Origin: Thalia democratica
Lineage: Eukaryota
Direction of reading: 5' to 3'
Assembly (NCBI GenBank): GCA_965202585.1
Contig: OZ241826.1
Location: 73,222,001-73,286,000 of the forward strand
DNA: 64,000 nucleotides
A model generated the notes under the pieces. That model was not told the origin of the DNA, did not search any database, and saw only the letters and a program-made list of their open reading frames with translations. Below, piece by piece: positions 1 to 50,689 of the stretch (its first letter is position 1; the number at the start of each line of letters is the position of its first letter). The position numbers and the translations under genes were made by a program.

Positions 1-29
1 AAGCTATATTAAATTATTAAATTTTAAAC

Positions 30-3000
30 CAGTTTCAGCAGGGTTTCCCTCCCCTTCGCAGTAGTAACCAGGAGAGCAGGGCTGGCAATCTGACGGATCA
101 CTGCTTCCGTAGTTGTCGTTGAAAGTTGATTCAGGACATGCACTCATGGAGGAACTGTTCATTGGACAGTAATGACCTAGAAAACGGGTTATATTAATGG
201 GCTAAAGATCAAACAGTTTTATTAAAAGTATAAGGTTTAATTATTATCAAATTTGTGCTAAATATATCTTTAAAACCCGTAAAATCAAACTATATTTTAA
301 AATAGTTTTACTTTAATTGATTAAAACGTAAAACATAATTTATGCTCAACATTCATAATTGTATTTATACTAGCAACAAAGTTATCTATGGGCCACCTCT
401 GAAAAAAAAACTTTTTGTAGGTTTTTTAAAATAGAAATTTTAGTCAGTAGTCAAATAATAATAAAAAACAAAACGAAAGATCTCTATTAATAACTTGGTA
501 CACAAACTATAAACAGATTTAAAAGATAAATAAGTACACTTGAAAATAAAAAAATACAAATACAATAATTACCAGGTTCACACTTTTCAGGGGCGGTCAT
601 GTTGTGGGTGGGACACACGAAGCCTGGCGGGCACGACTCGCAAGCCGACATCTGCAAGTCGGGACCGTAGTAACCGGGCTGGCAGCCCTGCGCTACCCCG
701 CTGCCCTCCTCGCAGTAGAAACCCCGCGGACACACCTCCCCCGTCACCCCGTCGACCGGCTCGCTTGAAGACGCTCCTCCGTAACACACAAACCTTTAGA
801 GGTTAAATCTCACTGGTTTTTATGATTTTTTTAAACTTTATTTGTATCTTTAAACGTTTTTTAATACTAACTTGCTAATTATATACCTTATTTAAGTGTA
901 ACTTGAAATGCAATTCGCTTTTGACTTATTATTATTATTCGTCGAATTACTTAATGTTTTATTTTGACACAACATAATTACGATTCAGACATGCAATATA
1001 TAACTAAAAAAATATTTTTAACGAACCCTTCACTGCACAATGGCAGGCCGACAGGCGAGATTGTGGCGGGATCAGGGCAGTAACGTCCTGGAGGGCAGTC
1101 CATGCAACTTTCTGGGCCGGTCTGCCCGCTGAAACTCTGGTACGTGCCAGGGTCGCACTGCAGTGGACTGCTAGTTTCTACTGGACAGTAGTAGCCGGGT
1201 GGACAGACACCATTGCCGACGGGAGAACCTGTTTTTGATGGTGCTTTTTTCAAAATGAGACTAAGAAACAAGTAAAGGTTAACCATATCACAAAAAAGTA
1301 AAGTTAAAACAATATAGTTACATACATTTACATTAGAAATCTAAGAAGTTTAAGCCTTAAAAATAATAAAAATTTGTTCAGAACAAAACTATTAAGAATA
1401 ATAAAGGTTTAAATTTTTACATAAAACGGAATTTATTTAAAATAATATAAACTTAAAACTCTGCATAATAAAAATGTATTATTGAAAAATTAATTTTCTC
1501 AATAGTAGTTTAAACTATTTTTCGTTGTAAATTAATACTAAAATAATAAACATAGTTACAAATACTGTTAAATGTTTAGAAAATAAAAAAACCTAATACA
1601 TCTAAGCTACCATCATCAGGTGTTGACTCATTAGCGCCACCTAGACAGTAAAAACCCGCCAAACATTGACCACTTGGTGAAGCTTCGCCTCCATTGCAGA
1701 AAAACCCTAAAAATTTAATCAAGCTTAGAAGCTAAATTAATAAAAAGGAACTTTTTAAAAATTATTTATTTCGAACAAGCGTCGCCTCTGGTTGTAATAC
1801 TTACACTTCATATTACAGTAAATAAAGTTTCTTTTAAGAGTAAATATTAACAGTAACCTCCATCGCAAGGCAAACAATCTGCTGGGCTTTTTCCTTGCAA
1901 CTTGTCATTATAAGTACCACTAGGACATGGAACTGGCAGTGGTGTACGAACCGGACAGTAATTTCCCGCCGGACAGTCCTCTGGCTCTAAATTACCTGCA
2001 AAATTTTATAAAGCTGTTTACAACTACTACTATTATTTACTTCTCTACTTATAAAATTCAAGTGACAAAAAAAACCTTTGAAACATTTTTTGCAACATTT
2101 TTCTTACAACAACTATAAAAATAAAACTATATATCACAAATAAAAAATCAAAATGTTTTATTATAAGGCCAACTTTAGATTACACATTAACTTAAAGTTA
2201 GGAAAAAATTACACATATACTTTAAAGTTTTACGTTAATATATATGAAGTGTAGAATTAAATTTACAACGTATACCTTTTTTTTTGTAATTTTGGCAAAA
2301 TAAGCTTTGATATATATACTTTAAACTACTTAATAAACAAAAAAGAAAAAATCACATACCGTCATAAGGATCACAAATTTTTCCGGCAAGGCAAGGGTTG
2401 CAGAAACCTCTTTTGGTTTGATCCTGGAAGAAACCTGGGTCGCACACAGTCTGGTTGGCAGAACCTTCCGGACACTTGTGGTGCTTGTCACAGTAAGTAG
2501 GAGGCTTAGAAACCTTGTTTCCACCAGGACAGTAGTAGCCTGCACTGCAGTTTCCTGTTGGGTTGACATTTCCTACACCTGTAAAAGTTTATTAATGAGA
2601 TTTTGTATTTGTTTTTTGTTCTGCGAACATTAATGCAATTTTGTTGATGCTGTAATTTCAATGATATTTTCGTTTATTCAATGATTTCTGTATCAACTAA
2701 TAGTAATTAATAATGATAACAAACAAATTATTTGGTTGCTCTGTGCAACTCTTCTGACCGTAAATTTACTTTCTTGTGTTATTCAAAAGTTAACACTCAT
2801 TAAAAATTTTCAACTGTTAACCTTCGCAGTACATTCCAGCCGTGCACGGGACGCACAAAGTGACGTCATCATTTCGGTAGCTTGGTGAGTATGTGCCTTC
2901 CGGGCATGGCACCAACTTGCCATTTGGACAATAAAATCCAGGTTCACACACATTTTGATCTGGTACGGAACTGTTTTTGGTTTGGTTAGTTTGGTTATAA

Positions 3001-6000
3001 TTGAAGAATAATGATAAGGATATCAATTAGTGTTGATCATGATACTTGATAAGTTTCTTATTGATTTTTTTATGGAGACTACAAAGTTATAAAAGCTATA
3101 GTTTCCTAATAAAATTTATAAATAACCAAAAGTGATGGGTTAAGTTTTTCATAATTTACAACAGTTGTACTAACTCAAAATTATTAAACGGTCATAAAAT
3201 TTTGAAGTATTTACAACTGTTCGTAAGAAAAGATATAGAAGGTCTTTTTAGTAGACCAAGAGTGTTTTAAAAAGTTAAAGATGTCAAAACTCTACTTTAC
3301 CTTCCTTCATTACAATAATAACCAGGTGAGCATTCAGCAAACGGATTTGATAGTTTTTCATATGGACAATACATACCTTCGTCGCATAACAGAGGCTTAT
3401 TTGCTCCTCTCGGGCAATAAAAACCTGTTTATTTATTTTAAGCCATTTTTTAGCTTAAGGTTTTTAAATCGTAAAGAAACTAAAACATTTTTTAACAATA
3501 AAGTTTAAGTCTAAACGGCTGAATGCATAAAAAGTTAAAGTTTGTTTACCCGGCTGACAAATACTTCCAGTTGTGTCAACTAAAGAAGGGCAAACACAAT
3601 CAAATACGTTCGTGCATGTTCCATTACTGTAATTTATTTAAATATTTTTTTAGCTAATTAACAATTGAAAATTAATTTAGATACATTTTTCTACATCTTT
3701 TTTTATTTATTATTGACTTACAAACATATTTCTACTTTGAAAATAAAACTTTAATACTTATCTTTAAGTTGTAAAAATACATGCTATACCACTTAAATTC
3801 AGTAATTTTTAACTCATTATAACTACTTGATTTCTATTTTTATTCTCGTTTTCTAACTTAGTATAAAATTATAAAATATGCACAACTGACGCGATAGTAG
3901 AGTTGACGACGCCGTAGTTGTGAGGAGTCGGTGTTGATGAGCTGCCCACACAATAGAAACCTTCATCGCACTCGTCGAATGGTCTCGTGTTGCCCACGCC
4001 TGGACAGTAGTAACCGCCCGGACAACCGTCGCAACCAGATGACTCGTCAACTTGTCCTGAAACATTTTTTTTGATCTATGCTAGATATTACCTTTAGAGT
4101 GAAATTTAAAATTCAAAAAACTATTTGTCAGGTTGCAGAATCTTTGTTTGTTGTTGACAGTCGTGCGGTTCAGTTTATTGCTAATCAATTAAACTATCAA
4201 ACTTTCTTCAAATACTAAGTTTTCTAATAACTGACATACAAAGGTAAATCAGCTAGGTGTTCGTTATGCCAGAGTCCAAACAATTTAGCTTAAATTTTTT
4301 TTAGGCTTACGTAAAAACTTTAAAGTTACTAATTTATTATTAAACACCTGTTCGATTGTTGTAAGTTCCCTCGGGGCAGGGATACTGATTGAAGTCTACT
4401 GTGCCAGGTGGGCAGTAATAACCTTCCATACATATTTGTGCATCGGACGAGCTTCCGTCGCAGTAGAATCCTGAAAAAAAATTAGCATTTAAGAGATTTT
4501 GTTCTTACTAGTTTCTTTTTATTTTGTGCTTGATCTACCTGCTTTGCAATCATCGCACTTTTCTAGCCCTTCCACTTCAGCGAAAGTTCCTCTCGGGCAA
4601 AGTTCCGCAGAACCGTTGGGACACTGGTATCCTATACCACAGGGCCCACCGTCGCCCTGAAATCATTATTTTTACTACAACAAGCAAAGAAAAACTTGCT
4701 AACATGGTTTCTAACAGATGACATTTTATATAAATATAACTTAGTATAGCTTGTCTAACGTGTAGAAGCGAAACCAAACATTTAAAGAAAACGTACCATG
4801 TTAGTAATGTTGTTAGGGTTCGGCACGTCCACCCCAGACCTGCAGTCGAAGCCGGGCGAGCAAGGGGCGGTGGGCTCTTCAATGTGCAGTTGATCACAGT
4901 AGTGCCCGGAAACGCAGTCCAAACAAAACACGCCACTGCTCGCTTGCAACGACGGGTTGTAAGTACCTTTGGTGAATTTGATAATTTTATTTGGATATAG
5001 TAATGCTAAGTTTTATTATAAAAGTAGATGTAAAAATAAAGTAAAACTTTGTAAACCATATTTACGCATATCTTCGAAAAATTCTGATAGTTATCAAAAA
5101 CGCTCGATAGTTTAAAAATTGAACTTTTTTTATTGTTAAATTCCTAAAACAGAAAAGCTCTCTAATAATATTACTTGTATTAATAAAGCAACACTTTATA
5201 AACAACTACTAACTAATCTGGTAACAAACCAAATAGCTGGGTTGGTAAAAAAAGACTACTCTAATCGCTAAACTCATACTAAAACAAAAAAAATCTCACC
5301 AATCGGACACGGAGTCCAATCGTAGCCGGTTTTTTCACCGCAGTAATAACCGGGTGGGCATGGCAGGGGCAGCGACGAGGCATCAACGCAGTAGAACCCG
5401 GCGGGGCAGTCGTCACAAACGTCCTGTTTCGTTTCGTTGGCGTACGTACCGTTTGCGCACGGTCGCGGGAGCTTACTGCCCTCCTCGCAGAAGTGGCCGG
5501 CCGGACACTCGTGCTGAGTGCTGGTGGAGGAACCGCCGTCGCAATAATATCCGCTGTCACATTTGTCTGTGATGTTTTTAATAAAATTATTAAATGTTTT
5601 TTTCAAAAAAATACAAAGCATAACTTAATTTCATAAAATTTTATTAAAGTAAGCTATTTTTTTTGTCTAAAAAGACATAAAAACTAAAACTTATACTTAA
5701 ACCCAAAAAGGATTAAGCTAATTAAATGTTTTGTGTGTACATTACAAAAGTAAATAAGCAAAATAGTTACAACTAAAACGATTATGTGTTTAACAAAGTT
5801 TTTAAACCTGTAACGTTTTCATTTCCTGAACCGGAGCAAAAGTATCCAGGCTTACAGTCAACACAGTCAATTGGACTGGACTTCATCTCATACTCATTGA
5901 ATGTTCCTTTTATATAAGTTTTCAAATACATGAACATCAATTTAGGCACATATCTAAATAACTGCACAGAAAAACTTGTTCGATAAAACTCTTTGTAAAT

Positions 6001-9000: not shown

Positions 9001-12000
9001 TTTCCATTCAAATTTCATAGTTTATTAAGCAAAGTCACGCAAGAGAATTGTTTTAGATGACTTTGATTTTAGTTATAAGTTGGCAAAGATGTTTTTGAAA
9101 TCGGATAACAAAAGATTTAGTATTAGAACAAATAATTAGTTAAGTTTTTCAACTATTTGTTTTGTATTGTTGATTACTATCTATTATTGTAATATTGGTT
9201 ACAACAAATACTAATAACTAAAATAAAGGTGTTTTATCTCACCATCCTCCATCACACAGTTTGTATGGTTCACTTAATCCTTCTTCGTCACAATAAAATC
9301 CTCCTGTGCACAAGTAGCAATCATCTAACGCCTTCCCACCTAAAAAACAATAAAACCCACCATAAAAACAGCTTATTTGAAAGTATATGTTATTTTGCTT
9401 AAAAAAAGTATTGAGAAAATTACTTAATTACAATAATTGTATTAGTTCAGGTCAACCTTAACTTCTTACAGGTTATATTTTTAAAAAATTATCCATAATT
9501 TAGCTGTTAATGTTTACATCTAATTTTTATAAACAACCTTGAAGAAGAAAAAAACCATCACCTGTTTCATTTCTAAAAGTGCCCACGGGACATTGTCTGG
9601 GAAAAGCGGAGTTAATAGGGCAATACGTGCCAAGTCCGCACTTAGTTTTGTCAGAAGCCCCTTCGCCACAATAATAACCTGCAGGACAATTTTTACACGA
9701 CTCGCTCTGCTTGTTGGCAGCGTACGAGCCTCCTGAACAGTTTTTAGGGGCCGCCGAACCAACAGGGCAGTAGGTACCAGGTGGGCACTCATCTCCGTTT
9801 ATCTGTAAGTAAAACTTTGTTTTAACGTCTCAACTAGTACAGTATTGTAAGTATTTTTTATTACAGCAAAAACATGTTTTGTAAGCCGTTCAGAAAATTA
9901 ATGCTAGATTTTAAATGCTCTTGCGCTTTTATGACAAGTTTTTTAGCACCATAAGCATAAAAAACATGGCTAACACTTAGAATGGGAATTTCGTTCTGCG
10001 ATCCGGAAACGCAGTAGTACCCAGCAGAACACTGTCCGGTAGGTGCCGCAAGACCGCTAGTTTCGCAGTAATGTCCCGGAGAGCAGTCCTGGCACGAGTC
10101 TGATGATTCCTGCTGCCAGTCAGGCTGGTACTTGCCCGCATTGCAGGCGTATGGCTCGCCTGTGCCTGTTGAAATAAGGTACAAAAATTACGGAAAATAA
10201 TTTCAACTTTTATAACAAACTTTTTTAGGTTGATTACTAAAATTTCCTAGTTTAACATAAAATTGTACTAGCTAGTTGTCATAGTTGTCTACATGTCTAG
10301 TTAATTTTTTTTGAAGTACTTTTTCATTTAAATACAATAAAACTACTATGCAAGTACTCCTTAACATGATTGAGTTTCTATTGTTCAACTTTTAATCTGT
10401 TAATTGCTGTTAAGTTTTTTTAGTTATTATTGTGATTTTTATTTCTTTAAAGTTTAAGTTTCGACTATAAAAAACTATTATTTACCTTATTATAGTAAAT
10501 TTAAGCATGCTGTGTATTACAAAATGCCCGAATTTTTTTTTGTACACCAGTTCCTTATACCCTTTTTTTCTTGATCATTTTGTTATTTCTTTTCGTTTTT
10601 GTTCAACAAAATTATCATTAACTTAATGTACGATATAACTGTAATACTTTAAATTAAAGCTTCTTAGTTTAAAGTTTTTATAACCTTTTAAGCTTTTATG
10701 ACTGTTCTTGTAGAAATTAAGATATAAAATGAAACAAACCGTTCGGACAGTAAAATCCAGGTGGACAAACACCGGCGTTGCTTGCTGCATCTCCCTTGTA
10801 AGATGGTGTTTTTGAAATGGAAGCATTTCGACAATAATAACCAGCATAACAATCGCCTGTACGGCAAAATCGACTTTTTTTAATTATACAAATTTTAAAT
10901 GTTTTGAACATTGAAATAAAAATTTGTTTGCTAAGTTTTAAAAGACTTAAACTGTATATATTTGAAAATTTTGTTATAAATTAGTTCAAACTTTAACAAT
11001 AGCATCACACATTTATCTATAGTATTATAGAAATGATCACAGTCTAAACTAAACAGTTATATAAAGTATAAATACAAAATTATCTTGAATAAAAGTAAAA
11101 ACTTAAGTAACGTAAACAAACCTTCAGGGCCGGTAAGTCCGTCTGTAGAGCAATATTTTCCAGGGCCACAAGGGGTGCATTCATCCTCACTGGTCAGACC
11201 TTCTCTGTTTCCATAGTAACCCGCGGTGCAGCTCGGGATCAATTCGCCAGTACCTTCGGGGCAAAAAGATCCTTGCGGGCAAACCTAGTTTTTCAAAAAA
11301 GGTGAGTTGAATGCATAAAAACTAGTGAAAAAACTTGTTAACCTAGAAGTAAACCAATTAAAAGCCTAAAGTATTTTGTTTTAAAACGTAATTTGTAGGT
11401 TTGAATTTTTTTATAAAACTTAAAGTTTGTTTGTTATAAATTACAAAAATATTATTTTATTAAACTTAAAAGCTTACATGTTACGCAAGTAAAAGACCTT
11501 ATATAACTTGAAATAACTTAAACACCGATAAAAAAGCATACACCAATTTCAATTAAAACCAGTTTGTACAAGCTTAGCTCTTCTTATCAAATTAACGAAT
11601 TCGAAGATTGAATCAAATATTAAATAGTGTTAGTACTTGTAGTAATAGTTTGATCTCTATTCATTTTAGTTGCACTAGCTATCATCTAAATATTAAATTT
11701 GTTGTTAGGCTTTGAGTAAAATGGGTTAGTATGATTTATATTTTACATATAATAGACATGCATACTTTGCCATACAACAAATGCTAATTTATTGTAAGCC
11801 TTAAAGAAAAAATTAATTAACATACCTAGCATAAAACAGTGCTAATATCAATTTTTTTAATTTCATCTTAAGTCAATTTAGTTACACTAGCTTTCATCTA
11901 AGCACTAAGTTGAGTAAATATGTTGAGTAGGTTAGTAAAATTTCTAGTTTTTGTTGTTTAACAGCAAATCTTTAAATTTTAACAAAATAGCTATCTTACA

Positions 12001-36000: not shown

Positions 36001-39000
36001 ACGACTGCTTGGTCCGGGTACGGGCAAACAGAACCGGCCGGGCACTCTTGGCAGGACATCTGACCTTCTAATGAGTACGTTCCTGCGTCGCACGGTACAA
36101 TGGTGTTCTGTTTGCATGAAAGCAAAAAAAATTGACAAAACTTGATAAGAAAATCTTAATTTTATACTTTGTATCTTATATCACAATAAATTAAATTAAC
36201 TTTATTAAATTCATTATTATATTTATTTATTTATACTCACACTCTCGCAGCTGACGCCGGCGGGGCAGGGAAGGCAGGTAGAAGTTCCCGGTGGCACGTA
36301 AGTTCCGTCACTGCACTCTACAGATGGTGCGCTGTTTAAAATATTCACGGGTAGTATTTTTAAAACTATAAAACACACAAAAATTAAATCCAATGGGGTT
36401 TTCAGTTCGATATTCGAGTGTGTTTGTGACATGAGGAAAACAAAAATTAGTGTTAAGCCGTTCACATTTATTTGCGTTTAAATTGAAAATAATATATATA
36501 TTTTTAAAACAAGTTATGCATTTATTAAACTATAAGTTCCATGAGCAGTACAAAAGCATTTTTTTTCAAACTCACACACCTTGGATCGCAAATTTTACCG
36601 GTTTCGCACGGATCGCATTTCGTTTGATTCACTTTTCCGTTTGTAGTCGATCCAGATGGACACGGTGTGACTGTTTTAGTGTCTGGACAGTAGTAGCCTG
36701 ATGTTTAAGTACTTTGTCAATATATAATTCCACATGTGAAAAGATTTTAAAGTATTGTATTAAGTATAAAAATCAAACCTAATCCAGTATTATAAATAAT
36801 ACAAATTAATATTTTTTTTGAACTCAATTGAACTTTTAAAACACTAAAATTGTTCACATATAATAATTGTTCACAACCTGCAGGACAACCCTTGCAATAA
36901 CCCCAACCAGTCTCGCTGTACGTTCCCGCAGGACACAATCGTTGAAAATTAGATGATGGGCATTCTTTCCCGGCGGGACAGGGCGAACACGTCGATACTC
37001 CCTTTGTTTTAAACATTAAACATATTAATTTCAGAATCGATTGATGTATAAAAGAAGCAGCTTATATAAGTTTTGCATTATATATACTTCTGATTATGTA
37101 TTATTTTTAGAAATATGTGTAATTTAAGTATATTAAAGTTTGTTTAAATACTTATTAGATAAAATTTTCACTTAAGTCTCTTAAATTGGAATAGAATTTA
37201 CCTCAGGAGAAAATTCACCGAAATCGCAGTCGATCGGTGGTTGAGTTGGATCTGGACACCTTTTACCTGCTGGACATACCTGGCAAGAAGGTGACATTTC
37301 CATTTCTTCAGAATAAGTACCATCAGGGCAATTCTTTTCCTGCTCTTTGTCGTCACAGTAAAATCCTCTTGAGCACACATGGCATATTCTCTATAAATTT
37401 GTAAGTTGAACAAGAAATAAAAAGTTATTTTGTGGTAAGCTTTTTACTATGAAGGTATTTATTTTGTAAAACAATTTTTTATACTTTTTAGTAAAACAGG
37501 TACAAAAGTATGTTTTGTATCATTAAAAAAGCAAAAAAAAAATTACATTACTTTTAGTAAGTTGTCATATTTACTTTAAAGCTAAATTATAAAGTTAAAA
37601 CTTACCTGGTAAGCTGAAAAATTTTGTTTTACACATGACTATTCTATTTATTTATTTAATCCAAATCAACTAACTTCCCCTTGAGCGCTGTATTCCCCGT
37701 CAGGACAATTTTCAGGCCTCAAAGCTGGATCTGTGCACTTTTTGCCTGCCGGACATTCTTGACAGGAACTGGCTCCTGGGTTGGCGTTTGTGTGCTTGTC
37801 TGAGTGTTTAAAACGTTTTTAGCTTTTTTTAACACATTGTTACTAAATAGTGTCGAAGCCTTTATAAACTTTTTTTGAGCTTAATGATAGCTACTGTTTA
37901 TTCATATTTTCAATTTTACATAAACTAAATACCTGCTGGACATTCGGAACAGGTTGATACTCCCAGTGTTGAAAAGTATCCCGGAGGACAATCGACCGGA
38001 GATGTTGATCCGGGACACTCTTGGCCGGTTGGACATTGCAAGCAACTACTGGCTCCGGCTGAGCTGTACGTACCTTCGCCGCAAGCCTGGTTTGAAAATT
38101 ATCTTTATCTATCAGTTTACAGTTTCGATGGTTTACAAAGAAACATTTTTTCATGCAGTTTTTGTCAGCTTAACTTTCAAAATTTGTTTACTAAACTAAT
38201 TAGTTCACAAATTATATACAAAGAGCATTTTTAAATTTCAAAGAACGCGAAAAGGCATTCAAAAGTATAAGCAATTGTGTTTTTTATTTATGCTTACGCT
38301 TATAATTATAAAATTTTCTATTAAACTAGGTTTTTATTTTTGTAATTTCTTGCTTATTAAGTAAAAAAAAACATTGCGACAACAATATTTTTCCTTCTTA
38401 AAAGATTCTAAACAGTTTTTAACAGTATCTTGTCCTTGACAAGGCGTTAAAAGGTATTCAAGAGGTGTACAAATCGATAAGCAAAAGGTTTGTTTGTTCA
38501 CCAGGTACTAAGACCAAATGCTTTAAGCGCTTTTTTTTGTCGTTCAGTAAGCAGTAGTTTTAGCTTTTGCTGAATCAATTGTTGTTCAAAAGACAAAAAT
38601 AGGTGTATATAACCTTTTTATCATTTATATATGAAAAAAATTATAATAGGTGTTCACTTTGAACTTTGAACAACCTGGTACGTTTGTCCTAAGTAAGACT
38701 TTTTACATTGATTTCATAATTGATAAACAAATTTTGACATTTTAGTTACACAGCAGCTGTTTTTCAAATTACCCTAAGCTAAGAAAATTAATTCTTGTTT
38801 TGTTTGCTTTATGACAAGCTAAAATTAAACATTTTACTAGAATTAAATTGATTGTCCTTCATACACTGTCATGCTTGAAATACTAATTGAGAATTCTTGA
38901 ATTCTGTTATTTAAAAAAAAATTGTTATTTTTTTACTATAAGCACAGTAATTTACTTTTATTTAGTTAAAAGTTATGTTTTATAACTAAAACAATTCATA

Positions 39001-42000
39001 GATAACTTTTTTTTCAGATATAAAATGATTATATACATTTTTATAGCCATCCTCAGTGCAGTATTCCTTTATCAGCTGAAAAAAATAAAAGGGAAAGCTG
39101 AAATAAAAAAACTCATCTCATTTTACAAACAAACAAAAAGTTGGGCTCACACTGTGCAATCAGATGACACAATAAGAAAGTTCACAATAGATGTTCCTCA
39201 AACAGAAATAGATTTTTTGAACAATCGCTTGGACTCAATTAAGTAAGTCAAACTAATAAAAGTGTATGTTAATACTATGATAGTATAGTTTTTCTACTGT
39301 TTTAATTATCTAGATATTTTTACTATATTTTAATAAGTTTTGTGATGTGGTTATGTTAGGGTCTTAATGACACAAAAAATAGAAAAGTTGTAGGTTGTAA
39401 GATCAAAAGTAGTATCTAACTCAAAAATAAAATAATTTGATATGTTTTTTTTTTGAGAAGCTTTGAGTGTTTTGCATTTTTAGTGCATAACTAAAAGAAA
39501 CTTTTTGACTAATACACTACTATAACATATGTCTAAATTCCTAATTTTAGTTATATACCAAATTTTTTTTAAATAACTGTAAGTGAAATTCATTTCATTA
39601 TTTAGATAAAGTTGCAAAATATAAATGTATATGATATTTAACATTTAAATTACTTAGTTTTTTATAGATGGCCAGTTCAGTCACTTCCTGGAACCAACTT
39701 TACTTATGGGTTTAGAAATGATAAAATGAAAAGTATCGTTAAACATTGGAGAAATGAATACAAATGGTCAGAAAGACAAGAGCTTTTTAATAAACTTGAT
39801 AACTACAAAACTAAAATTGAGGGTTTAGACTTACATTTTATACACGAAAAATCACAACACAAAAATGTTAGTTTTTAGTTGCTTTTAAAAATTAAGAAAT
39901 TTTAATATTTAGAACTTCTGTTATCAGCAGTTTTTTTTTAATTTTTACTAGTTTAAGAAAATGTATATGTTTATTAGTAATCTGCAAATATTTTTCAGGC
40001 GAAACCAATTCTGATAACTCATGGATGGCCTGGCTCTGTTGTGGAGTTTTTCAAGCTAATACCACTGCTAACAGAAAAAAATGATGAAAATAGCTTTCAT
40101 GTAGTCTGTGCCTCAATTCCTGGTTATGGTTTTTCAGATGCAGCTCAAAAGCCTGGTTAGTGCTATATTATCAACTAGATTTTTTTTTGAAAATTCTGTG
40201 ACATAGTTAACACAATAGTTACAGATAATAAATTAGTTACTTCCCTATTTAAAGTGTATTTGAAATTATTATAGTTTAAATAACTAGATAAATTAATATT
40301 TAAACTGTTATTTTGATAAAACATTTTTCAAAGAATAACTAATTTAGCATATTAGTTAAATTTTACAGCAACAAATGCATCTAGATTTTATGTATTGTAA
40401 AAATAGTACAATAATTGTTTTAGTTATTAGTTTGTTTTAGGGTGCATATTAGAACAACAACTTTTAATTTTTCTGCTTTTTTTAGCAAATTTCACAAATG
40501 TACCTTGTGCAAAATTTAAATAGATTAAATTTTTTTTTTAATTTACGGTAGAGAGTTTTGATTTTCTGAAAACAATCCAATGCAAACAGCACTGGAAGTA
40601 AAAATTGTGACCTTAAAGTTTTTAGCTGCAAGTATTTTTGCAAATAGCTGCAAGCAATTATCACAAAAAAACATTGTGCAAATTTTTAGACAATTAAAAT
40701 AAAGTTAAACAGAGGCGTTTCTTGACTATTTGATTAAAATCTAAGAATTCAAAAAAATTTACAAAAAATGATAAAAATTACACAAAATCAAGAAGCGCCT
40801 CTGTGAAAGATTGTTAAAATCTTATTTAATTCTGCACAATATGTTTTTAGTGATTGCCACATGTAAAACAACTTCAAGCTAAATACTCTAAGGTCACATT
40901 TTTTTGCTCCCATACTGGGGTTATTTTCATTGCATTGGGGTTAATTCAGAATATAAAAATTTGTAGTTTTTTTAAACTGCTAAAATTTTGCACAAGATGC
41001 TTTTGTGGGGGTCGGGACAATTTTGCATGAGTGACAATTTTGCACAGAAGAGTAAAAAAATAATAACAATAAATAACAATAAAAATAGAAAACCGAACAA
41101 GGATTAGGGGTAACAGTGGTAGTCAAAAAATAAAAAAAAACTAGTATAAAAATAGAAAACGGACCAAGGGTAAAAGTGAATGTAAAAAAAGTAAATATAA
41201 AAATAATAACAATAAGAAAAAAAAGTTACTGACCAAGGGTAAGGGTTAGGGGTAACAATGATAGTAAAAAATATATAAAAATATAAAAATATAGTTAATT
41301 ATTAAAAAGAAAATTCAACCCGAGCAAAAGTGTTACATTTGTCAAATATAAAAAAGTAGCTGAAAACTTAAAAGTTGCATTAAAAACCCTTGGGGTGTAT
41401 TTTTTCATTGTAAAGCTTGCATATAAAAGTCATTGATATATACAAACCATACATTCAATAATTTTTTTAAAGGCTTTAATGCATATGAATGCGCGAGAGT
41501 TTTTAACACACTGATGAACAGATTAGGTTATGAAGAGTACATTGTGCATGGTGGTGATTGGGGTAGCATGATTTCTACTTGCATTGCTACTTTGTTTCCT
41601 GAGTGAGTTGTTCAATTGTTATGAATTTTATAAAAATCAATTACTAAGAAACAAGTTTTGATCATAAAAGGACTATGAAACTTAAAAATTATACTTTCTC
41701 ATTTAGTAAATCACTGTTTAAGAAAGTTGCAAGAACTAGTTAAACTTTTTAAGTCCTTTTTTGCATAATTTTACTTTTATATTATATTGTTAATCTTTAA
41801 CAGTCAATATTTTTGAGTTTCATACACTTTGAGTCAATATTTTGTAACAAGTAGTTGATTCTATAAAGTAAAAGCAATTAGTTTGTACTTCCAGCCATTG
41901 TATTCATTAATTAACTTATATACCTTTTAGTTTTGTTTTAAGATATTTTAATGAAAACTTCCTTTTTTTAAATACTTATGACAAATTAGTTGTTTTCATC

Positions 42001-45000
42001 AGAGTTGCCAAAAAATCTGGTATCCTTTAAAAACTTGGAGTTTGATAAATTTTGAAAAAAACCTAGAGTATCGAAGAAAGATCACTAATAAACATGAAAC
42101 TTTTAACAACTTATAAATGTATTGTAATGAAACTTCGATTTGAAAAAAAAAGATTTTATCATATAAATAAAAAATGTTTGCTTTGTTTTTCTCTTTTATA
42201 CATTTAAAGTGGCTTTAAAGTATCTTTTTAATGTTGTTATACTGTTTAAGATATTTTTTATATTTTTCATAAACTTAATTTTATACTAAAAGAAATTGTG
42301 ATTCAAAACACCTAGAAGAAATTTCTCAAAAACTTTTGGCAACCCTGTTTAATATTTTTTTAATTTTTTGTACCATTTACTAAAGATATTTTAAATTTAA
42401 AGGAATGTAAAAGGAATTCATCTCAACATGAATTCAGCCCGACCAACAGCAAAACACTATCTCAAACAATTTGTGGGATCATATTTTCCTTCTTTGTTCT
42501 ATCCAAAGGTAGAGGCAGACAAGATATTTCCTTTGGGAAAGAATTTCAAGAACCTGTTGGAAGAAACTGGGTATTTTCATATACAGGCAACTAAACCAGA
42601 CACAGTAGGTGAGACTTTTTTTTCTCCATTTTTCGAATAACTAACTTATTATTACAATTGCTTTTATAAATTTAGGTGACTGTTTCGTACTTAAAAGAGT
42701 TTTAATTTGTTATTTTGATTCCAAAACATTTTTTTTGATAATTTGATATTAAAGCTATTTTAACTCATCATCTTATTTTATAAAGTCTTGCATTTTAATC
42801 TAAAGTAGTCGTTATGAATATTTCAGTGTTCCTAAAAGTTTTACTTAATGCTCAGGTTTTGCTTTGAGTGATTCTCCTGTTGGACTAGCTGCTTATATAC
42901 TTGAAAAATTTTCTACTTGGACTGATATGGATTTTCGGTTATTTTCTTTTTTTTATATATACTATAAAGTTATTGTATCTACAGTGATTTTTTTATATAA
43001 TATAAAACTTAACATAAAGTTTTATGTAAAGTAATATTTTAAACTATTTTTACTTAGTCTTTTAATAGCAAAACGTTTAACAACTAAATTTAAAAAGTGC
43101 GATATAAAAGTATACATTTTTATAATGTAGAGTTAAGAATGAGTAAAAATTCCTAAAAACGGTTAGTTGAGCCTTAGTCATCTATTTTTAAGTAGGTCAA
43201 TACTTTTCATAAAAATTTATGTTGTGTTAAAAAGCAGTTTCAATAATGCAGTCATTTTTTCTTTATCTAAAAGTTTTTAGTTGTACAAGTCAATCATTTG
43301 ATTATGATAAATGTACCTGTTATATATGTATATACAAATATATGCGATGATTTCTTAAAATTTTAGCATAGTACATGGTTCCAATGAAATCAAGATATTA
43401 TTTCAACGGTCATTAATTTGTTTTTATTAATTCGTAATCTAAATCTGTTAATTAAGCGTTTTTGAAATAGTGTATTTGTTATACATTTATAAAAGTTAAA
43501 AAGAACCAAATGTGTAAAAAGAAATTAAATACTTTTTGGTGATTTTTGCTCATTAAAAACTTATTTTTCTAGTTCATACTTATATTATAGTAATTACAAT
43601 TAAGACAAAAGAAATTCAACTTCATTGTTCTACAAAACTTTATTGGCTCTTATAAGAGAAATATAATCATGTTGTCAGTTGGACTATTAGTCAGTTGTTA
43701 CTTGAAATTGAAATTTCAATTAATTTATAATATATAGCCATTTTTGAAAAAAAAAAACAAACCTATAGACAGTTTTTTTAGAGTAGGTTAAAAATTCAAT
43801 AATTATCTATTTTATTTATATATATATTATGTAAACAACAAATGTATCTATCTAGTAAACTTTGGAAAGTTCTGTAAAAACAGATCTCATTTTTTAAAAT
43901 GATAAGAAGTGATTGTGATTTAAAAATAATTTTATTTTTTCATTTTCGTTTTATAATTAACTAAGAAATAACTTTAAATATTTGTTTTGATAGATTTAAA
44001 ACTGTATAAACATTCTTGTCAACAACTTCATAGCTAAAAAAACTTTATTAACTTAGTTTAATTTAGTTAATTACGATGAAAGTTTTAAAAGGTTTGCGGT
44101 TTATCCTAGTTTTAGTTTTTTTTTTAAATAGTTTTTCTTCTACTTTAAACAAAACTTTTAATTTTAAAAATAAAAGAAACACTGAAGATGGAAGTTTAGC
44201 AAAACACTTTACTTTAGATGAGCTGCTAGACAATGTGATGGTTTACTGGATTAACAACAACATAACATCTTCAATGAGATTTTATAAGGAGAATATTTCG
44301 AGATCATATGATGACGTTAAAAAACTAGGAAGGTATAAATAGTTATGCTACAACAATAAAGTGTTTTTTTTTTGTAACATTTTGTTTTGAAATTTATAAA
44401 GTTTTTTAGCTTGCATATGAAAAATTTAATTTGTAATCAACGGTCAAAAATTATTTAAGAATCTTTTTATACCCTATTTACTTAAATTAAATCAAAAAAT
44501 GTATTTCTTTTTATACTTAGCCTAACCAACGGTGCTAGGGCTTAATATTTTAAAAATATTCCTCCTTATACTGTTTTTCCTAAAGTGTACTCAAAAGATA
44601 ACCGCTTCAAACAGTTTGCAGTTGAAAATGCCGTCGGGGTACGCTTGGTTTCCTAATGAGATTGCTCCAGTGTCGAAAGAGATTGTCACTGACAAGTTCA
44701 CCAACATGGTCCAGTTCACCTACATGAAAGAAGGAGGCCACTTCGCCGCCTTTCAGCATCCTCAGCTGGTTGCCGATGAATTGAAAAAATTTTCATCCAA
44801 AGTTGAAATTTAATTTTTATTAAAATTTTATATGTGCTCTTTTCATAAACATATTTTTCATTAAAGTATTTTAAAACCAATCAAATGAAATGTAATCATA
44901 ATACAATAACATATGCAATGCTTACTATTATGTTTTGGTGTAATTTTTTGAAAAACTAACTGTAATTTACTGTTTGAAACATTGCAGATGTTTTGTAATA

Positions 45001-48000
45001 TTTGCTTTATTTTTAGCAACAACTTAATAATTTTTATGTATCATGTAAATGAGTCTGAACTTTTTTTTGTAATTTGAAGCAAACAGTAAAACTTTTATTA
45101 ACTATTCTTTATTATAGATAAGTGTTTCATTTAAGTTGTCAATAATTAATAGTAAAAGTTTAAGTTTTATGTTGTTTTTTAATTCAAAAATATTCCGCAT
45201 TTTTTTCGCTAAAAGTACTAATTTTTTAGGTAAAACCAGTTTATGTATCCAAGGTTAAAATGAATAAATTTATGTTTGTTTTTTTACAAATAATAAAGTA
45301 ACTTTGATTCATGTGGGCTATAAAAAATGTTATATGCTATAAGTGAACATAATATCTTTCACCAAGAACATTTTAAGGAAAAAGGTTTAAGTTGGCATCA
45401 TTTCGAAACCTTTTGTTTTTATAAAAAACTTTAATGTTTTTTTAGCTCATTGTTTGTTAAAAAAATGATAAGTTTAACTTTTGAAATTTTATAGTAAACT
45501 TATAATTAAAACGTATTAAAAAAGGTTTTGGTATTATGGTATTTTTCCAATAATCGATAAAGAAGTTTTAAACGTTTTCATAATGTTGAAGACTTAAGGT
45601 AACTTATTTTTGCTATATACAACTATAGATTGTATTGAAAATAGTGAATGAGATGTATTTTAAAAATGAAAATTATTGTGTAAATGCAATTGCAAGCAAC
45701 ATGAAAAACTGAATATAAAGTAGAAATTTGGAGAATGTTATATTAAACTAATATAAAACCGTTTTTACCTTTTTTTTTTATGAACTTATAGTTTTGTAAA
45801 GAAAATACCTTTTTTAGGTGTGTCATTTAATACGAGTAAAATGTAGTAACTAATATTAAATAAATTAATTTTATTAGAAATATTAAAAGCAGTCTACTGT
45901 TTAATGAAGCAATTTGGTGTTAAAATTACAAGAATAAAATTTTTTTTAAAGTTTTATGTAATTTAACAAATATAGCTTAAAAAGTTTCTACGATACCTCT
46001 TTTAATTTTGTAGGGTTTTGAAAATTTGTTTAATATGAATGATACAAAAAGATTTCAGCATAAATATATACTGCTAAAGTAAGCATTCTATCAAGAAGTT
46101 GCTTTGCACTCAAGGGTTTATCTAAAAGATTTCAGCATTTGGTTTGTCTTGAGACTTTATCAATTTTAACATTTCTAGTAAGTTTCTTGTATAACATTTC
46201 TTTTTTATGGTTAGTTTTAACTTTTCATTACCAATCTTAACAATAAGTTTAATTTTTTTAAAGGAACGTCCAAACGCTGAGAAGTTGTTAATTTTTTCTC
46301 AATTACAATGAAAAAATTCGTCTTCATAACAATTTATGACTTAGCCTATTTAGTTTACAAAATAATCTTAAACTACGGTGATCGATCTGTTTTTTATTAG
46401 AAAACATGATCTAAGTTGCCATACGGCTTATTTTGTTTTTATTGTGGAATGTGGACTATATTTATGAGTAACTTAATAAAAAATTAATTTAGAGTCCAGT
46501 TTTTTAGTTAAAGAAACTGTACTTAAAAATTTTTAAAGTAGGCATTAACAAAAAAACTCAAATACAACATAAAGTATATTGCTATTAGTTATAATTTTAA
46601 CATATGTAAGTTTTTTTTTACAAAGAGTTAAATAGAAACTAAACAAGTTAAAAAAATTCTAATTAAATATAAATCGAAGTAGAAACTAAAAGTTAGAAAC
46701 TATCGACTCTCTTTCTGTACAAATCATGTTTTGTCGGATTATATATATAGTGTGCTTATAAGCGGATTTTGTTAAACCTCCTTCGATTCATTGAAATATA
46801 TAAACTTTGTCTTAAACAAAAGCATTACTATGGAATTGTATAAAGTTTAAACAGATAAAAATACATACTGATACCTAATAAACCAATATTAACCTAATAG
46901 TAGATAAAACATGTTGTTATTTTTTGATAATCAACACATCAGATATGATTAGAAGATAAAGTTACTACTTAGTTAGCAAAAAAAAAAGCGACTTTAATTG
47001 AAACAACTTGCTTTAATATACTAAATAAACTAATGAAATACTTTCAAAAAATGACTTTTTATAACTAAAACCAAATTTTTAAATTGTTAAACTTTAAAAA
47101 AACTAAGTTTTCATTTATTAAAAACCTATTTTGCTAAGTTTATATGTTTTTAATAATATACTTCATAGTTTTATATATAGATACCATAAGTTTTTATGAA
47201 CATTTAAACAGCTCATTTAAAAAATGCTAAGGAGTACAAAAGACTAAAGCCAAACTGCTTTATTTTAATAGGAAAATAGCTTTTGTTTAACATTTATCCT
47301 CATTATACTTGTATTAATGAGTAATTTCAAAAGATGTGAAATTGTGAGCTTAAAAATCGATTCAGTAGACTCAGAGTAGATTCAGAGTAAATTTAGATTT
47401 AAAAATACGAGATAAAATAAATTAATCTGTCTTGGTAAAAATACATAATTGTTACATAAAATACCAATTCAAAATACTCAAGTTAAAAAGTAATATTTTT
47501 TTCATATATTCAAAAAATTCACCAAGGAAAAAATCACCAGTACTAAACTGATTTGATTTTATTTGAAATTTTAAGTCGACTTAGTTGTGTATTCAAACTT
47601 AATCTACTTAAAACTATTTTTAATTTTTACTAAATTATTCAGTGTTTGTTAATCAAGCACATATTTTTATCTACCGTACAGATAAAGTCTTGTATGTTTT
47701 GTGAAATCTGTTTTAAAAACACTATTTGCCTAAAGGTGTTTACTAAGATAACTATTCGTTTAGAACTTTCTTTCCTTTCTGACTAAACATAACTAGAGTT
47801 TATGGTTACATAAGCTTAAACTGTGCAAATAACATCAATTTTTATCTTGTATTAGTCAGAAAAAATGACATAATCCGTTTTTATTAATCATTAGTTGGTG
47901 CCTGATGTTTTTTTTAATCATTTTAAGTTTTTTTTAAGCTGATAACCTTGCAAGGCTATGCTTAATTACTAACCTTGCAAATAGTGTCGCTTTTCGGACT

Positions 48001-49468
48001 ATAGCTTCCAGCTGCACACTCGACTGGACTTCCATACAACTCCACACAGCTAAAACCTTTAAATGGTGTCTTAACTTTCAAAGTTCTACAACAAAAACAC
48101 ATAAAAATGCCGATAAAATCAAATTTTACACTGTTATCTCTACACTATTAATTAAAACAAAAAAAAATACTCTACAGTAAACATTTTTTCAACCAACCTC
48201 CAGGGCAGACTTTGCAGCTGCCTTCACCAGTTTTGTCCTGGTAAGTTCCAACCTGGCAGGGCATTGGGGGCGCTGTTGATCCGATACAGTAGAATCCTAT
48301 CAAGCATTCCTCGCATGATGACGTTGTGTTGTCGTAATACTCTCCAATCTGTAAAGAACAATTGTGCTTTTGCAGAGATCTCTTAATAGATCAGTACAAG
48401 TTGTTGTTAGAAAAAAAAAATATTTTTCTAATACATATTTGTTAACACATCCATATGTGAAGCCTTTGAAAAATAGCTATATCAAAAAATAATATTTTTA
48501 TACGTTAAAATCAAATGAATAGTTTTATTATTTTTTGTTTAAAATAAAAATATACATATGTTCTATCATGCAAGTTAAAAATCTTTTAAATAACTTTAAC
48601 ACTTTTGAAAGTTTGATAACAAATATCTAATAATTATACTAAATTAAAAAAGTATATTAATTTAATGAACCTCCTTTTACGCTTCAACTATTTATATGTT
48701 TTACTAAAATAAGTTATAAGAATTTCTATTACAAAAATTTATTTCGATAAATATATTTTTTGATAAAAGAGTAAAAACTTTATTTGGCTTGTGAAAATCG
48801 TAACTACTATCATTACTAAGACTTTAAAATATTAAAATATGTTTTCTAATAAATAAACTTTGCTAGGCTTTAATACTTTGATTCAAAAACTATTGCACGC
48901 GCCTATGGCCCTGAAGTTTTGATCATTTTATTAAAATATAAACTCAATTAATGTATCGAAAAAAATTTGCGTTATAGTTTTAATGTAGTTTGTACATTCT
49001 TTATGATCTTTCCAATTTTAAAACAAAACTTGCCTTTCAACTTAAATTATTTCTTTTTAAAAACCTTTCAACAAAAAAACCTAAAACTTAAAGGGTGTAA
49101 ACAAAGTTTGTTTATTAATTTTGAATGAAATTAAATCTTAGAAAATGAAATAGAGTTTAAATAAAATTAAAGTTTAGTTTTACTTCACTGGTAGTAGATT
49201 TAGCATTACTAACCAAAACTAAATAAAGTTTTTTTTTTCTCATTATCAAATGACATTGTAAAACTCAGCTAAATAACTCAAAAGTAAGAGAACTTATACT
49301 ATCAACAACAACAAACAAAATATACAAACTTACTGTGCAAGCTGCAAATGATGCTGTATCTGAATCATATGTAGCTCCATACGGCGTTCCCTCACAAAAA
49401 GTTGATCCTGGGCGACTGTAAAGGTCAATCGTGAGCAGGATTAACACAAGTACGACCGTTTTGGTCAT
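30..49468 (-). CDS. Gene A: giant signal-peptide-bearing cysteine-rich repeat protein (GCC2/GCC3, Ephrin_rec_like-type repeats), at least 4,515 aa, 3' end outside the window
   Basis: Hand-spliced: 90 exons, all introns GT-AG, phase consistent at every junction, 13,546 coding nt. Exons 5'->3': 49334-49468, 48198-48348, 47974-48056, 37933-38086, 37675-37799, 37202-37390, 36878-37001, 36580-36697, 36241-36331, 35984-36107, 35650-35846, 35087-35212, 34615-34818, 34184-34349, 33887-33994, 33403-33510, 32783-32980, 32600-32728, 32036-32228, 31625-31755, 31188-31412, 30911-31052, 29182-29305, 28717-28905, 28338-28454, 27948-28130, 27527-27721, 27284-27392, 26769-26951, 26345-26493, 26089-26166, 25614-25776, 25363-25476, 24989-25177, 24497-24637, 24247-24316, 24053-24185, 23642-23780, 23549-23581, 23173-23367, 22880-23029, 22396-22587, 21720-21836, 21391-21540, 20868-21020, 20549-20764, 20239-20358, 19625-19769, 19227-19423, 18751-18963, 18186-18292, 17866-18119, 17174-17340, 16621-16734, 16365-16475, 16110-16233, 15109-15221, 14748-14932, 14609-14663, 14215-14550, 13922-14062, 13499-13644, 11122-11284, 10740-10856, 9975-10165, 9562-9802, 9243-9339, 8800-8951, 8350-8523, 8109-8218, 7864-8020, 7321-7509, 7071-7178, 6490-6651, 6089-6208, 5808-5906, 5300-5566, 4797-4966, 4539-4656, 4348-4470, 3891-4056, 3550-3626, 3301-3424, 2822-2970, 2360-2578, 1858-1995, 1593(or 1611)-1706, 1027-1228, 573-793, 30-176. 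Recurrent motifs CPxGxYCPxG and CxxGTY/F...CxxC; many N-x-S/T sequons. Family assignment is by motif recognition, not by search. Confidence 0.9.
11721..13040 (+). CDS. Small 114-aa Lys/Gly/Gln-rich protein with acidic C-terminal tail, nested antisense in intron 62 of gene A; weak endosulfine/ARPP19-like segment
   Basis: Exons 11721-11724 (ATGG|gttagt), 12020-12084 (|gtaagt), 12296-12406 (|gtaagt) and 12876-13040 join in frame: MDKGTKKAAGNSKTSQQSSGGKKVDGGKGSRSGAPSNQQPTKTAKKLKQQPQANVGNKTGRYDGMSGLHGKDFLQAKLNKKKKYPGESSIDPNKIRSKKFSSSDSDDDDDKNCA*. The exons are GC-richer than their flanks. AATAAA near 13135. Absent from the ORF track. Confidence 0.75.
29847..30073. repeat. Long near-perfect inverted repeat (hairpin or MITE-like) in gene A intron 22
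   Basis: Arm ttagaactatcaaaaaatcagtatcagtctttatacaaacacttcgaagagatctttcgtttatta (29853-~29918) matches the reverse complement of ~30002-30067 with about 3 differences. An inner pair ttcagttcttattcaaata / tatttgaataagaattgaa is also present. Confidence 0.9.
38421..38541 (-). repeat. ~125-bp dispersed repeat, copy 1 (gene A intron 3)
   Basis: Minus strand gacaaaaaaaagcgcttaaagcatttggtcttag...aaaccttttgcttatcgatttgtacacc...ataccttttaacgccttgtcaaggacaag aligns with the other two copies. Confidence 0.7.
39025..44813 (+). CDS. EPHX1: Microsomal-type epoxide hydrolase (EPHX1/JHEH family, alpha/beta hydrolase with EHN domain), 448 aa, nested antisense in intron 3 of gene A
   Basis: 8 exons in frame, 1,347 nt: 39025-39242, 39668-39866, 39999-40155, 41473-41602, 42403-42608, 42856-42937, 44177-44332, 44615-44813. 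N-terminal membrane anchor MIIYIFIAILSAVFLYQL. Motifs HGWP, SIPGYGFS, GGDWG (nucleophile Asp), GYFHIQATKPDT, SDSPVGLAAYILEKFSTW, RFYKEN, FPNE (acid Glu) and GGHFAAF (catalytic His). The symbol denotes the family; orthology is untested. Confidence 0.95.
40504..40996. mobile_element. ~490-bp degenerate foldback (MITE-like) element in EPHX1 intron 3
   Basis: Concentric inverted pairs: cttgtgcaaaattt 40504-40517 / aaattttgcacaag 40983-40996 (perfect 14 bp); ccaatgca / tgcattgg; tgtgacctta / taaggtcaca; attgtgca / tgcacaat; acagaggcgtttcttga 40709-40725 / tcaagaagcgcctctgt 40788-40804. Confidence 0.75.
41005..41340. mobile_element. Non-autonomous element with TTAGGG-containing internal motifs and subterminal ttttgcac / gcaaaagtg repeats, copy 1
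   Basis: ggattaggggtaacagtg at 41101-41118 is identical to 59862-59879. Also gaccaagggtaagggttaggggtaac, A-rich spacers, gacaattttgcat/gcac repeats on the left and cgagcaaaagtgtt on the right. Confidence 0.65.
49334..49468 (-). CDS. Gene A first coding exon with signal peptide (MTKTVVLVLILLTIDLYSRPGSTFCEG...)
   Basis: ATG, a basic residue, then hydrophobic core VVLVLILL. Ends at a consensus GTAAGT donor in phase 0 that matches exon 48198-48348 (AACT|IGEYYDN). Confidence 0.85.
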
Positions 49469-50454: not shown

Positions 50455-50620
50455 CGTCCTAAAAAGTTTACTTCGCGTTTTGAAACACTTTGGCACGCGT
50501 TTAAACTTTTTCTCTTTTAACACACGTGATGCCATTGTACACTTTCAAACGAGATTTACAACACTGAATGTAATAAAAGATTTTACAAATAAAAGACACA
50601 CGTAAGTTTTTACGACTTCG
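50455..50620. promoter_or_regulatory. CpG-enriched patch between gene B and gene A; candidate gene A promoter or 5' UTR exon
   Basis: Cluster of CG-containing words (cttcgcgtt, ggcacgcgt, acacgtga E-box, acacgtaag, tacgacttcgt) in otherwise very AT-rich DNA, about 1 kb upstream of the gene A ATG. Function is inferred. Confidence 0.3.
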
Positions 50621-50689
50621 TAAGAAAGCTTATATAAATAAATGAACTAATGTGTACAAACTGCTAGAAATTTTGTGAAGTATAGTTTA

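Follow-up and report, generated by a model that had tools for sequence, protein, structure and literature searches.

Cysteine-rich modules of the PF07699/TNFR-like, disulfide-stapled type are found in ELAPOR1/2 (KIAA1324), SCUBE1-3, SVEP1 and the cysteine-rich region of the Eph receptors. In these proteins, 1-10 such modules stand beside MRH, CUB, EGF, sushi or kinase domains. Here we describe a giant gene of Thalia democratica, carried on the minus strand of a 64,000-nucleotide stretch of DNA (assembly GCA_965202585.1, contig OZ241826.1, positions 73,222,001 to 73,286,000; hereafter the window), in whose predicted product more than 100 modules of this type make up nearly the whole ectodomain. 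ELAPOR1 is also a type I membrane protein, and Foldseek returned its cryo-electron microscopy structure as one of the matches (9vql, E 2e-4). The other domains predicted for the Thalia protein (cupredoxin-like, tail and C-terminal) are unrelated to those of ELAPOR, SCUBE, SVEP1 and Eph.

Two other described systems are relevant. The best structural match of the repeat modules was to Mst1 (PDB 8wa2, 9b4h, 8tx1), which builds a long rigid extracellular flagellar hair. This match covers only the run of cysteine-rich modules; no relation between Mst1 and the repeats is shown at the sequence level, and a common module fold is no proof of common function. In the S1/heterodimerisation domain of Notch and the SEA domain of mucins, cleavage occurs inside a folded, membrane-adjoining domain of a huge ectodomain. 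The likeness of the Thalia protein to these is one of working and not of membership, since the predicted fold differs (cupredoxin-like in Thalia) and cleavage in Thalia is predicted from a conserved multibasic loop.

An earlier note on this window had described a signal-peptide-led, cysteine-stapled repeat array, and had taken it to be a domain-less and unanchored filament. The array held up in our analysis, while the absence of other domains and of an anchor did not. We conclude that the window probably holds the first 90 exons, which is the 5' two thirds, of a single-copy gene of 141 exons, predicted to encode a type I membrane protein of approximately 6,976 residues.

The exon chain and the cysteine-repeat array

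The motif C-x-x-G-x-[YFW] occurred 206 times in the three minus-strand frames of the window, as against 4 times in the plus-strand frames. It was dense at bases 78-38,086 and again at 48,000-58,584, and CPxGxYC / CxxGTY repeats filled stop-free minus-strand segments throughout bases 7-38,098 and 47,965-58,617. The window is AT-rich (GC 24-37%), and the genome is 802 Mb in size.

An exon chain was then built by our own dynamic programming from codon log-odds and iteratively trained splice-site matrices, leaving the coordinates of the earlier note unused. It contained exactly 90 exons on the minus strand, running from exon 49415/49468..49334 to exon 176..30. Joined from the ATG at 49468, these gave 13,555 nucleotides (nt) and 4,518 codons with zero in-frame stops, with the frame still open at the left edge and all the introns between them of the GT-AG type. 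An uninterrupted 90-exon frame of at least 4,515 amino acids (aa) from a signal peptide to the open window edge, as proposed earlier, was thus reproduced by an independent chain. The junction 47974->38086, which spans an intron of 9,887 nt, was also recovered independently, and the splice restores the canonical C-x2-C-x2-G-x-Y motif across it (...SDTICK/ACGEGTY...). The N-terminus, MTKTVVLVLILLTIDLYS..., resembles a signal peptide as judged by eye only. The parts of the gene in the window are as follows.

49334..49468, minus strand: exon 1, with the ATG at 49468, the predicted signal peptide and the first cysteines (sequence reading, frame check)
47974..48348, minus strand: exons 2 and 3 (48348-48198, 48056-47974), with canonical Ephrin_rec_like repeats (exon chain, Pfam PF07699)
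38087..47973, minus strand: intron 3, 9,887 nt, with no repeat motif on the gene strand and a nested plus-strand gene inside (motif density, open reading frames)
30..38086, minus strand: exons 4-90, most of the window's cysteine-repeat ectodomain (exon chain, internal repeat profile)
1..29, minus strand: start of intron 90, with 51 further predicted exons to the left and the stop at window coordinate -20002, about 73,201,999 (left DNA)

Across the whole gene model, exons have a median length of ~146 nt and introns of 241 nt, and phase 1 was seen in 64 of the first 100 introns. Phase-1 introns are usual for shuffled extracellular modules. The second-largest intron, at 11285-13465, measures 2,181 nt, and intron 3 contains a 69-nt tandem repeat at 41099-41297 (2.8 copies, 63% matches). 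An AG lies 6 nt 5' of the ATG of the giant gene (ttctag/ataataATG, window 49469-49480), and could be a candidate spliced-leader acceptor if this animal trans-splices.

Homology was searched for with single exons, by reference, or with proteins from the databases (including local BLAST against the fetched proteins), and the joined exon model was used only for checks of frame, composition and internal repeats. In this model, the repeat array is ~5,130 residues long. The internal profile covered residues 35-5167 with 76 unit matches and had the consensus ECPAGYYCPEGTSKPKPCPEGTYSNETGAKSESECKECPAGKYCEEEGLTEPTEKCEAGYYCPEGS..., with a unit consensus of ...CPxGxYC...C..GTY......C..C..G.YC.... The array residues 35-5167 contain 567 cysteines, and the entire ectodomain has 80 N-x-S/T sequons. 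The repeats are diverged and follow no strict period, being arranged partly in units of ~100 residues.

We observed that three stretches of the array scored at or above the PF07699 gathering score of 23.1 bits. These were 48175-48390 (33.7), 37928-38098 (23.6) and L003:5140-5598, left of the window (30.6), so the assignment to a PF07699-related, cysteine-stapled extracellular array was borne out by the hidden Markov model search. When 18 other stretches of the array were tested against Pfam, 6 scored 17-20 bits and 12 had no match at E <= 0.01. Most of the array is a diverged form of PF07699 that Pfam does not capture, and the exons above the cut-off lie near both array ends. Weak exon matches to TNFR_ELAPOR1_6th were also seen.

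The gene left of the window: predicted membrane helix and cytoplasmic tail

We examined 40 kb of DNA to the left of the window, for which negative coordinates denote window coordinates past the left edge. The cysteine repeats continued to about -4,700. Beyond this point, non-repeat exons were placed by hand from a three-frame read-out, ending in a transmembrane exon. The repeats are followed by a CxC-rich knob, a Ser/Thr/Asn-rich stretch, and an exon with RRKR and then an acidic Tyr-rich run. After these come three exons of a beta-rich domain, and an exon with a 23-residue hydrophobic helix, YILVILGLFLLSAFALFIAIIIM, followed by RPDD...WLPRYRSLGERW. Together with the exons of the tail, the full model comprises 141 exons and 20,931 nt, encodes 6,976 residues over a span of 69.5 kb, and has no internal stop and only GT-AG introns. 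It extends on the minus strand from 49468 to about -20002, which is 20 kb past the left window edge, and an AATAAA is found ~40 nt after the stop at -20,002. The conserved tail exon has one copy in this genome.

These results bear directly on the reading of the protein as a free filament, secreted or in the matrix, that consists of cysteine repeats and lacks both an anchor and further domains. The window alone does show only a signal peptide and repeats. However, past the window edge the open frame reaches non-repeat exons that are conserved, and then a hydrophobic helix of 23 residues with basic residues after it; those exons align in order with the module in 40 of the fetched relatives. We therefore regard a free filament as very improbable, although a shed form could arise if a furin-type site were used. 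The earlier statement that the protein has no other recognisable domain is contradicted by the left DNA, where the model has a conserved module outside the repeats, a transmembrane helix and ~1,430 cytoplasmic residues. Likewise, the reading as a surface or matrix filament was tenable only as long as the window truncated the gene, since the membrane anchor lies to the left. Extending leftwards to find the C-terminus, as the earlier note had proposed, yielded the transmembrane helix and the cytoplasmic tail, with the stop at -20,002.

The cytoplasmic tail in the model has 1,429 residues, of which 14% are Glu, 12% Lys, 9.7% Leu and 7.4% Arg. Just inside the membrane is a conserved WLPRYRSLG motif, followed by the FNVRTLYDKLEDQN helix. 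Beyond this helix come a stretch of about 1,100 residues rich in Glu, Lys, Leu and Arg, which probably forms helices or a coiled coil, and then a conserved C-terminal globular domain. In the structure prediction of a bird fragment (described below), the tail was helical at low confidence.

The assignment of the tail to the same gene had to be weighed against an in-frame TAA that ends the transmembrane exon. If this TAA is used, there would be two genes: a giant type I protein that stops 41 residues after the membrane, and a separate downstream coiled-coil gene. In that case, the colinear matches described below would stem from an ancestral gene that was divided in this lineage, or else the short isoform would be the dominant one. 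The TAA overlaps a GAA/GTAATT donor (L003:1599-1602, window about -8398 to -8402), and through this donor the WLPRYRSLG-type motif, the FNVRTLYDKLEDQN helix and the Glu/Lys-rich tail follow in order in the left DNA in a compatible frame. The donor is weak, lying at the 10th percentile of the donors of the gene, and no RNA run was found among the sequencing runs holding the locus; both points favour two genes.

The homology evidence points the other way. The tail open reading frames (ORFs) matched the post-membrane regions of the same database proteins that matched the repeats. The crinoid protein P0046 (Anneissia japonica XP_033122761.1, LOC117121631 type; 3,985 aa) was matched in order at 2385-2412 (the transmembrane exon), 2446-2493 (77% identity over 48 residues), 2544-2707, 2988-3137, 3239-3321, 3413-3438 and 3564-3689. 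Tail exons also matched Chromosphaera, Nelusetta (a fish) and an unnamed 7,808-aa protein. The segment with 77% identity to the crinoid, the most conserved of the cytoplasmic part, has neither a Met nor a start upstream in its own open frame. The spacing from the transmembrane motif to this segment (about 33 residues) agrees with that of the crinoid protein. No AATAAA follows the TAA, and in orthologues, from animals to Chromosphaera, the two halves belong to a single protein. Since the TAA overlaps a donor, the spacing fits the crinoid protein and the conserved block has no upstream Met, we favour one gene, and consider two genes improbable. Splicing would then give the long tail and read-through a tail of 41 residues, and this could be a regulated isoform switch.

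Two other models were tried for this region and rejected. One ended at the TAA after the transmembrane helix (110 exons, 5,587 residues), and was dropped because the downstream ORFs match the tails of relatives. In the other, a second exon chain ran past -20,002 into unrelated ORFs; it was cut at the stop, since the later exons match no relative and an AATAAA is present.

We also considered whether the repeat array might be decaying, as in a pseudogene, or have been collapsed or expanded in the assembly, an error to which long internal repeats are liable. A search of sequencing runs found the locus in three runs from two studies; their kind is not on record, and no RNA run was among them. These runs hold about 0.7 (near 0.69) of the sampled words of 47800-53700, the same share that a 1.2x skim gives. 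As this stretch is mostly non-coding, we have taken the three runs to be DNA skims. Their word content argues against an artefact, as does a frame of 20,931 nt open over 141 GT-AG-bordered exons with non-repeat modules 40-77% identical to those of relatives. Repeat collapse is also unlikely, since the repeats are diverged and have no strict period. Decay or misassembly is, of all the alternatives, the one we find hardest to credit.

Relatives, the membrane-adjoining module and predicted folds

A search with a single 111-aa exon of the array (14216-14548) matched 5,025 cluster representatives at E < 1e-3, of which 404 fell below 1e-30, with alignments over positions 2-108. The latter number is incompatible with an orphan status for the protein. 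Many of the relatives are 4,000-7,800 aa long with 30-78 matched units, the longest reaching 7,808 aa. Named sources included Chromosphaera (an ichthyosporean), Intoshia, Kipferlia and Chilomastix (metamonads), Diplonema, a crinoid, fish, frog and turkey, and a relative in Fabomonas is a 7,499-aa ORF on a single transcript. Many of the database relatives are partial, as expected from the earlier remark that gene predictors fragment such genes.

Further queries extended the family. The crinoid tail retrieved full-architecture orthologues in sea urchin, sea star, hemichordate, amphioxus and bivalve. The turkey module and tail retrieved birds, turtles, lizards, frogs, sharks, teleosts (si:ch211-286b4.4) and mammals, the mammalian matches being in cats, bats, ferret, alpaca, guinea pig and Peromyscus ("Predicted gene 9195"). 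The Chromosphaera query added oomycete relatives. Arrays of this kind had earlier been assigned to non-vertebrate lineages, and the presence of the family in birds, reptiles, frogs, sharks, teleosts and mammals removes that restriction. By sequence comparison, this is an old eukaryotic family, from oomycetes to mammals, predicted in many genomes, and the Thalia protein is a new member of it.

The exons at -4758, -5097, -7108, -7400 and -8192 matched in the same order, with all five in each of 14 proteins and at least two in 40 of the 173 proteins fetched. The Thalia protein has, immediately before its single transmembrane helix, a CxC-rich knob, a multibasic loop and a beta-domain in the order of these relatives. 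The parts also follow the same order in Anneissia japonica, Antedon, Diadema, Asterias, Glandiceps (6,496 aa) and Branchiostoma. Between Thalia and the deuterostome orthologues the exon-wise identity is 35-77%, and on the predicted one-gene model WxPxYRxLG, the FNVRTLYDKLEDQN helix, the Glu/Lys-rich tail and the C-terminal domain would be common to them. The array before the module is longer in Thalia (~5,100 residues) than in the hemichordate (~4,500) or the crinoid model (~2,000). Vertebrate members are shorter (about 1,500-4,600 aa). These include si:ch211-286b4.4, Gm9195 and the 'zonadhesin-like' or 'SCO-spondin-like' models of birds, reptiles, sharks and carnivores, and have the module, the helix and the start of the tail in common with Thalia (turkey P0052, frog P0004). 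The N-terminal exons of the giant gene could not be placed on the N-termini of orthologues, because the repeats match everywhere.

The relatives are labelled "uncharacterized" or carry automatic names (zonadhesin-like, SCO-spondin-like, MEGF6). We found in none of the exons tested the domains of zonadhesin (VWD, TIL, MAM) or of SCO-spondin (TSP1, LDLa, VWD), and these identities were rejected. In P0004 (frog) and P0046 (crinoid), PF07699 was the only family that Pfam found, and precomputed Pfam annotation gave PF07699 only, or nothing, for nearly all vertebrate relatives. Pfam had no match on the non-repeat and cytoplasmic exons, and a sequence search of the PDB with the crinoid orthologue had none either. 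In the literature searched, we found no functional study of the family, and its gene symbols appear only incidentally in lists. si:ch211-286b4.4 is listed among genes higher in zebrafish testis than ovary (10.1101/650218), and Gm9195 is an entry in a cochlear table from the assay for transposase-accessible chromatin with sequencing, ATAC-seq (PMC12528612).

To describe the module next to the membrane, we used an alignment of 17 relatives and an AlphaFold2 model of P0155, a 902-aa grouse fragment that extends from the last repeats through the module and the membrane helix into the beginning of the tail. The folds were thus obtained on a bird orthologue and not on the Thalia protein. The ectodomain of the model had a predicted local distance difference test score (pLDDT) of 80-93. 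Residues 1-168 matched the Chlamydomonas mastigoneme protein Mst1 (Z 8.3, root-mean-square deviation (rmsd) 4.3, 156 aligned, 21% identity, Foldseek E 3e-7), and the repeat modules also matched ELAPOR1, thyroglobulin, and the cysteine-rich regions of Eph and TNFR.

Residues 310-485 matched pseudoazurin and plastocyanin in many entries, with Z 6.0-6.6, rmsd 2.7-3.0 and 90-99 of 99-124 residues, and the superposition spans these targets entirely. The membrane-adjoining beta-sandwich of the bird orthologue is tentatively predicted to fold like a cupredoxin, with Z below 8. In the Thalia protein the multibasic RRKR lies at residue 5340, in the alignment column occupied by RRRLL, RRGR or QRR in relatives (RRRLL in other invertebrate deuterostomes). 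In P0155 this site sits in a disordered loop (341-361, P0155 numbering) inside the cupredoxin-like domain. One bivalve relative has a ZP domain on record, and a ZP domain with a furin site before the membrane was therefore considered; this was rejected, as the site lies ~185 residues before the membrane, inside the beta-sandwich.

Residues 786-902 of P0155 resembled minimal zincins such as selecase (minigluzincin, HtpX-like), with Z 7.4-7.6 and pLDDT 64-79. In Thalia, the corresponding C-terminal exon (-18402..-18634) is 45% identical to P0046 3627-3689. The family motif VLVH[A/T/S]LAHIK reads VVHVVAQVVAK here, so that the H-x-L-A-H of the deuterostome orthologues becomes H-V-V-A-Q in Thalia, with the second His lost as in birds. 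The H-[A/T/S]-L-A-H motif has no Glu in any aligned member, HExxH is absent from the C-terminal domain of the aligned members, and there was no Pfam peptidase match. As the motif lacks Glu and has decayed to H-V-V-A-Q here, we conclude that the domain is not an active HExxH peptidase; the idea of a zincin metallopeptidase was dropped, as the resemblance is one of fold only.

Several points weigh against the long-tailed, membrane-anchored protein with these folds that we favour. None of its junctions is confirmed by a transcript, and its splicing is predicted from sequence and homology. The stop-skipping GTAATT donor is weak, as described above, and an isoform with only a short tail, of 41 residues past the membrane, may exist. 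Approximately half of the cytoplasmic exons come from the exon chain alone, which makes the tail length and exon count approximate. The cupredoxin (Z ~6) and C-terminal (Z ~7.5) matches, both from the bird orthologue, are too low for VIA scores to be relied on by themselves. Cleavage, rod shape, cytoskeletal link and location are all matters that we infer.

Neighbouring genes and proposed working

Two other genes were recognised, one upstream of the giant gene and one inside its third intron.

50690..57546, minus strand: separate tandem paralogue of roughly 650 aa, outside the giant gene (own ATG, signal peptide at 57546, PF07699)
39025..44813, plus strand: nested antisense gene in intron 3, microsomal epoxide hydrolase-like (ORFs, structure-sequence matches)

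The upstream paralogue scored 49.7 bits with PF07699 on 55242-55550 and has about a dozen canonical Ephrin_rec_like repeats. Its 5' exon links between 57459 and 56127 are provisional. The last exon (50771-50690) is in frame and reads ...LLVWLLIFCCYLFKKN-stop, with a hydrophobic tail and an AATAAA directly after. This hydrophobic tail is a candidate glycosylphosphatidylinositol (GPI) signal or short anchor.

The proximity of this unit raised the question of where the giant gene starts. If the repeat exons 57546-51035 were its 5' part, the gene would begin further upstream and 49468 would be a false start. An unconstrained exon chain did join 51035 to the AG at 49417 in frame, though a third of all joins would keep the frame by chance. 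The upstream unit possesses an ATG, a signal peptide and a last exon of its own, the last exon with a hydrophobic tail, stop and AATAAA, and exon 1 of the giant gene also has its own ATG and signal peptide. We dropped the first exon chain, which had fused the two, because the paralogue has its own last exon, stop and AATAAA. An upstream start thus appears quite improbable, if slightly less so than a free filament, and we retain 49468 as the start.

The nested ORFs lie at 39025-39246 (a membrane-anchor-like N-terminus), 42428-42640, 44076-44342 and 44532-44813, the last of which matched the C-termini of solved epoxide hydrolases (1qo7, 8xiz, 6ix4; E ~1e-5). Together, the ORFs look like exons of a microsomal epoxide hydrolase.

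For the giant protein, we propose the following working. The ectodomain would be glycosylated and rise from the cell surface as a long, stiff rod, and this shape of the array we hold to be rather likely. A furin-type convertase may cut the multibasic loop inside the membrane-adjoining domain, after which the rod would be held only through the shared beta-sandwich, as in Notch S1 and SEA. That the chains stay joined in this way, allowing force-driven release or signalling, is a tentative suggestion drawn by analogy. The helical cytoplasmic tail might tie the anchor to cortical or ciliary structures; such a link of the stub we consider doubtful. The giant protein would then be a mechanical tether, a sensor or a shed surface coat, and not a free matrix fibre.

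The lineages in which we found the family (animals, ichthyosporean, oomycetes, metamonads, diplonemid and ancyromonad) have, as far as is known, flagellated cells. A ciliary or flagellar role is suggested only by these flagellated taxa, by the testis bias in zebrafish and by the likeness of the modules to the mastigoneme, and is to be taken as a lead. Taken to its full extent, the proposal would be an ancient surface tether: a rod of hundreds of nm, a convertase-cut cupredoxin-like hold, and a coiled coil of more than 1,000 residues with a dead zincin-like domain, together serving as a force-sensitive or shed hair of flagellated cells. That all of this holds at once is rather unlikely.

With this analysis, an open-ended "orphan filament" is replaced by a complete, testable gene model, in which the repeat protein and the coiled-coil protein, seemingly the products of two neighbouring genes, probably come from a single gene. 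The family it belongs to is probably very old, since it is found across distant eukaryotic lineages. It consists of predicted membrane proteins of 2,500-7,800 residues in very distant eukaryotes and has been kept in vertebrates; it has no curated name, Pfam covers a small part of its length, and it has no solved relative by sequence. The putative cleavable cupredoxin-like domain, the cytoplasmic motifs and the zincin-like end without Glu would provide handles on this family in zebrafish (si:ch211-286b4.4) or mouse (Gm9195).

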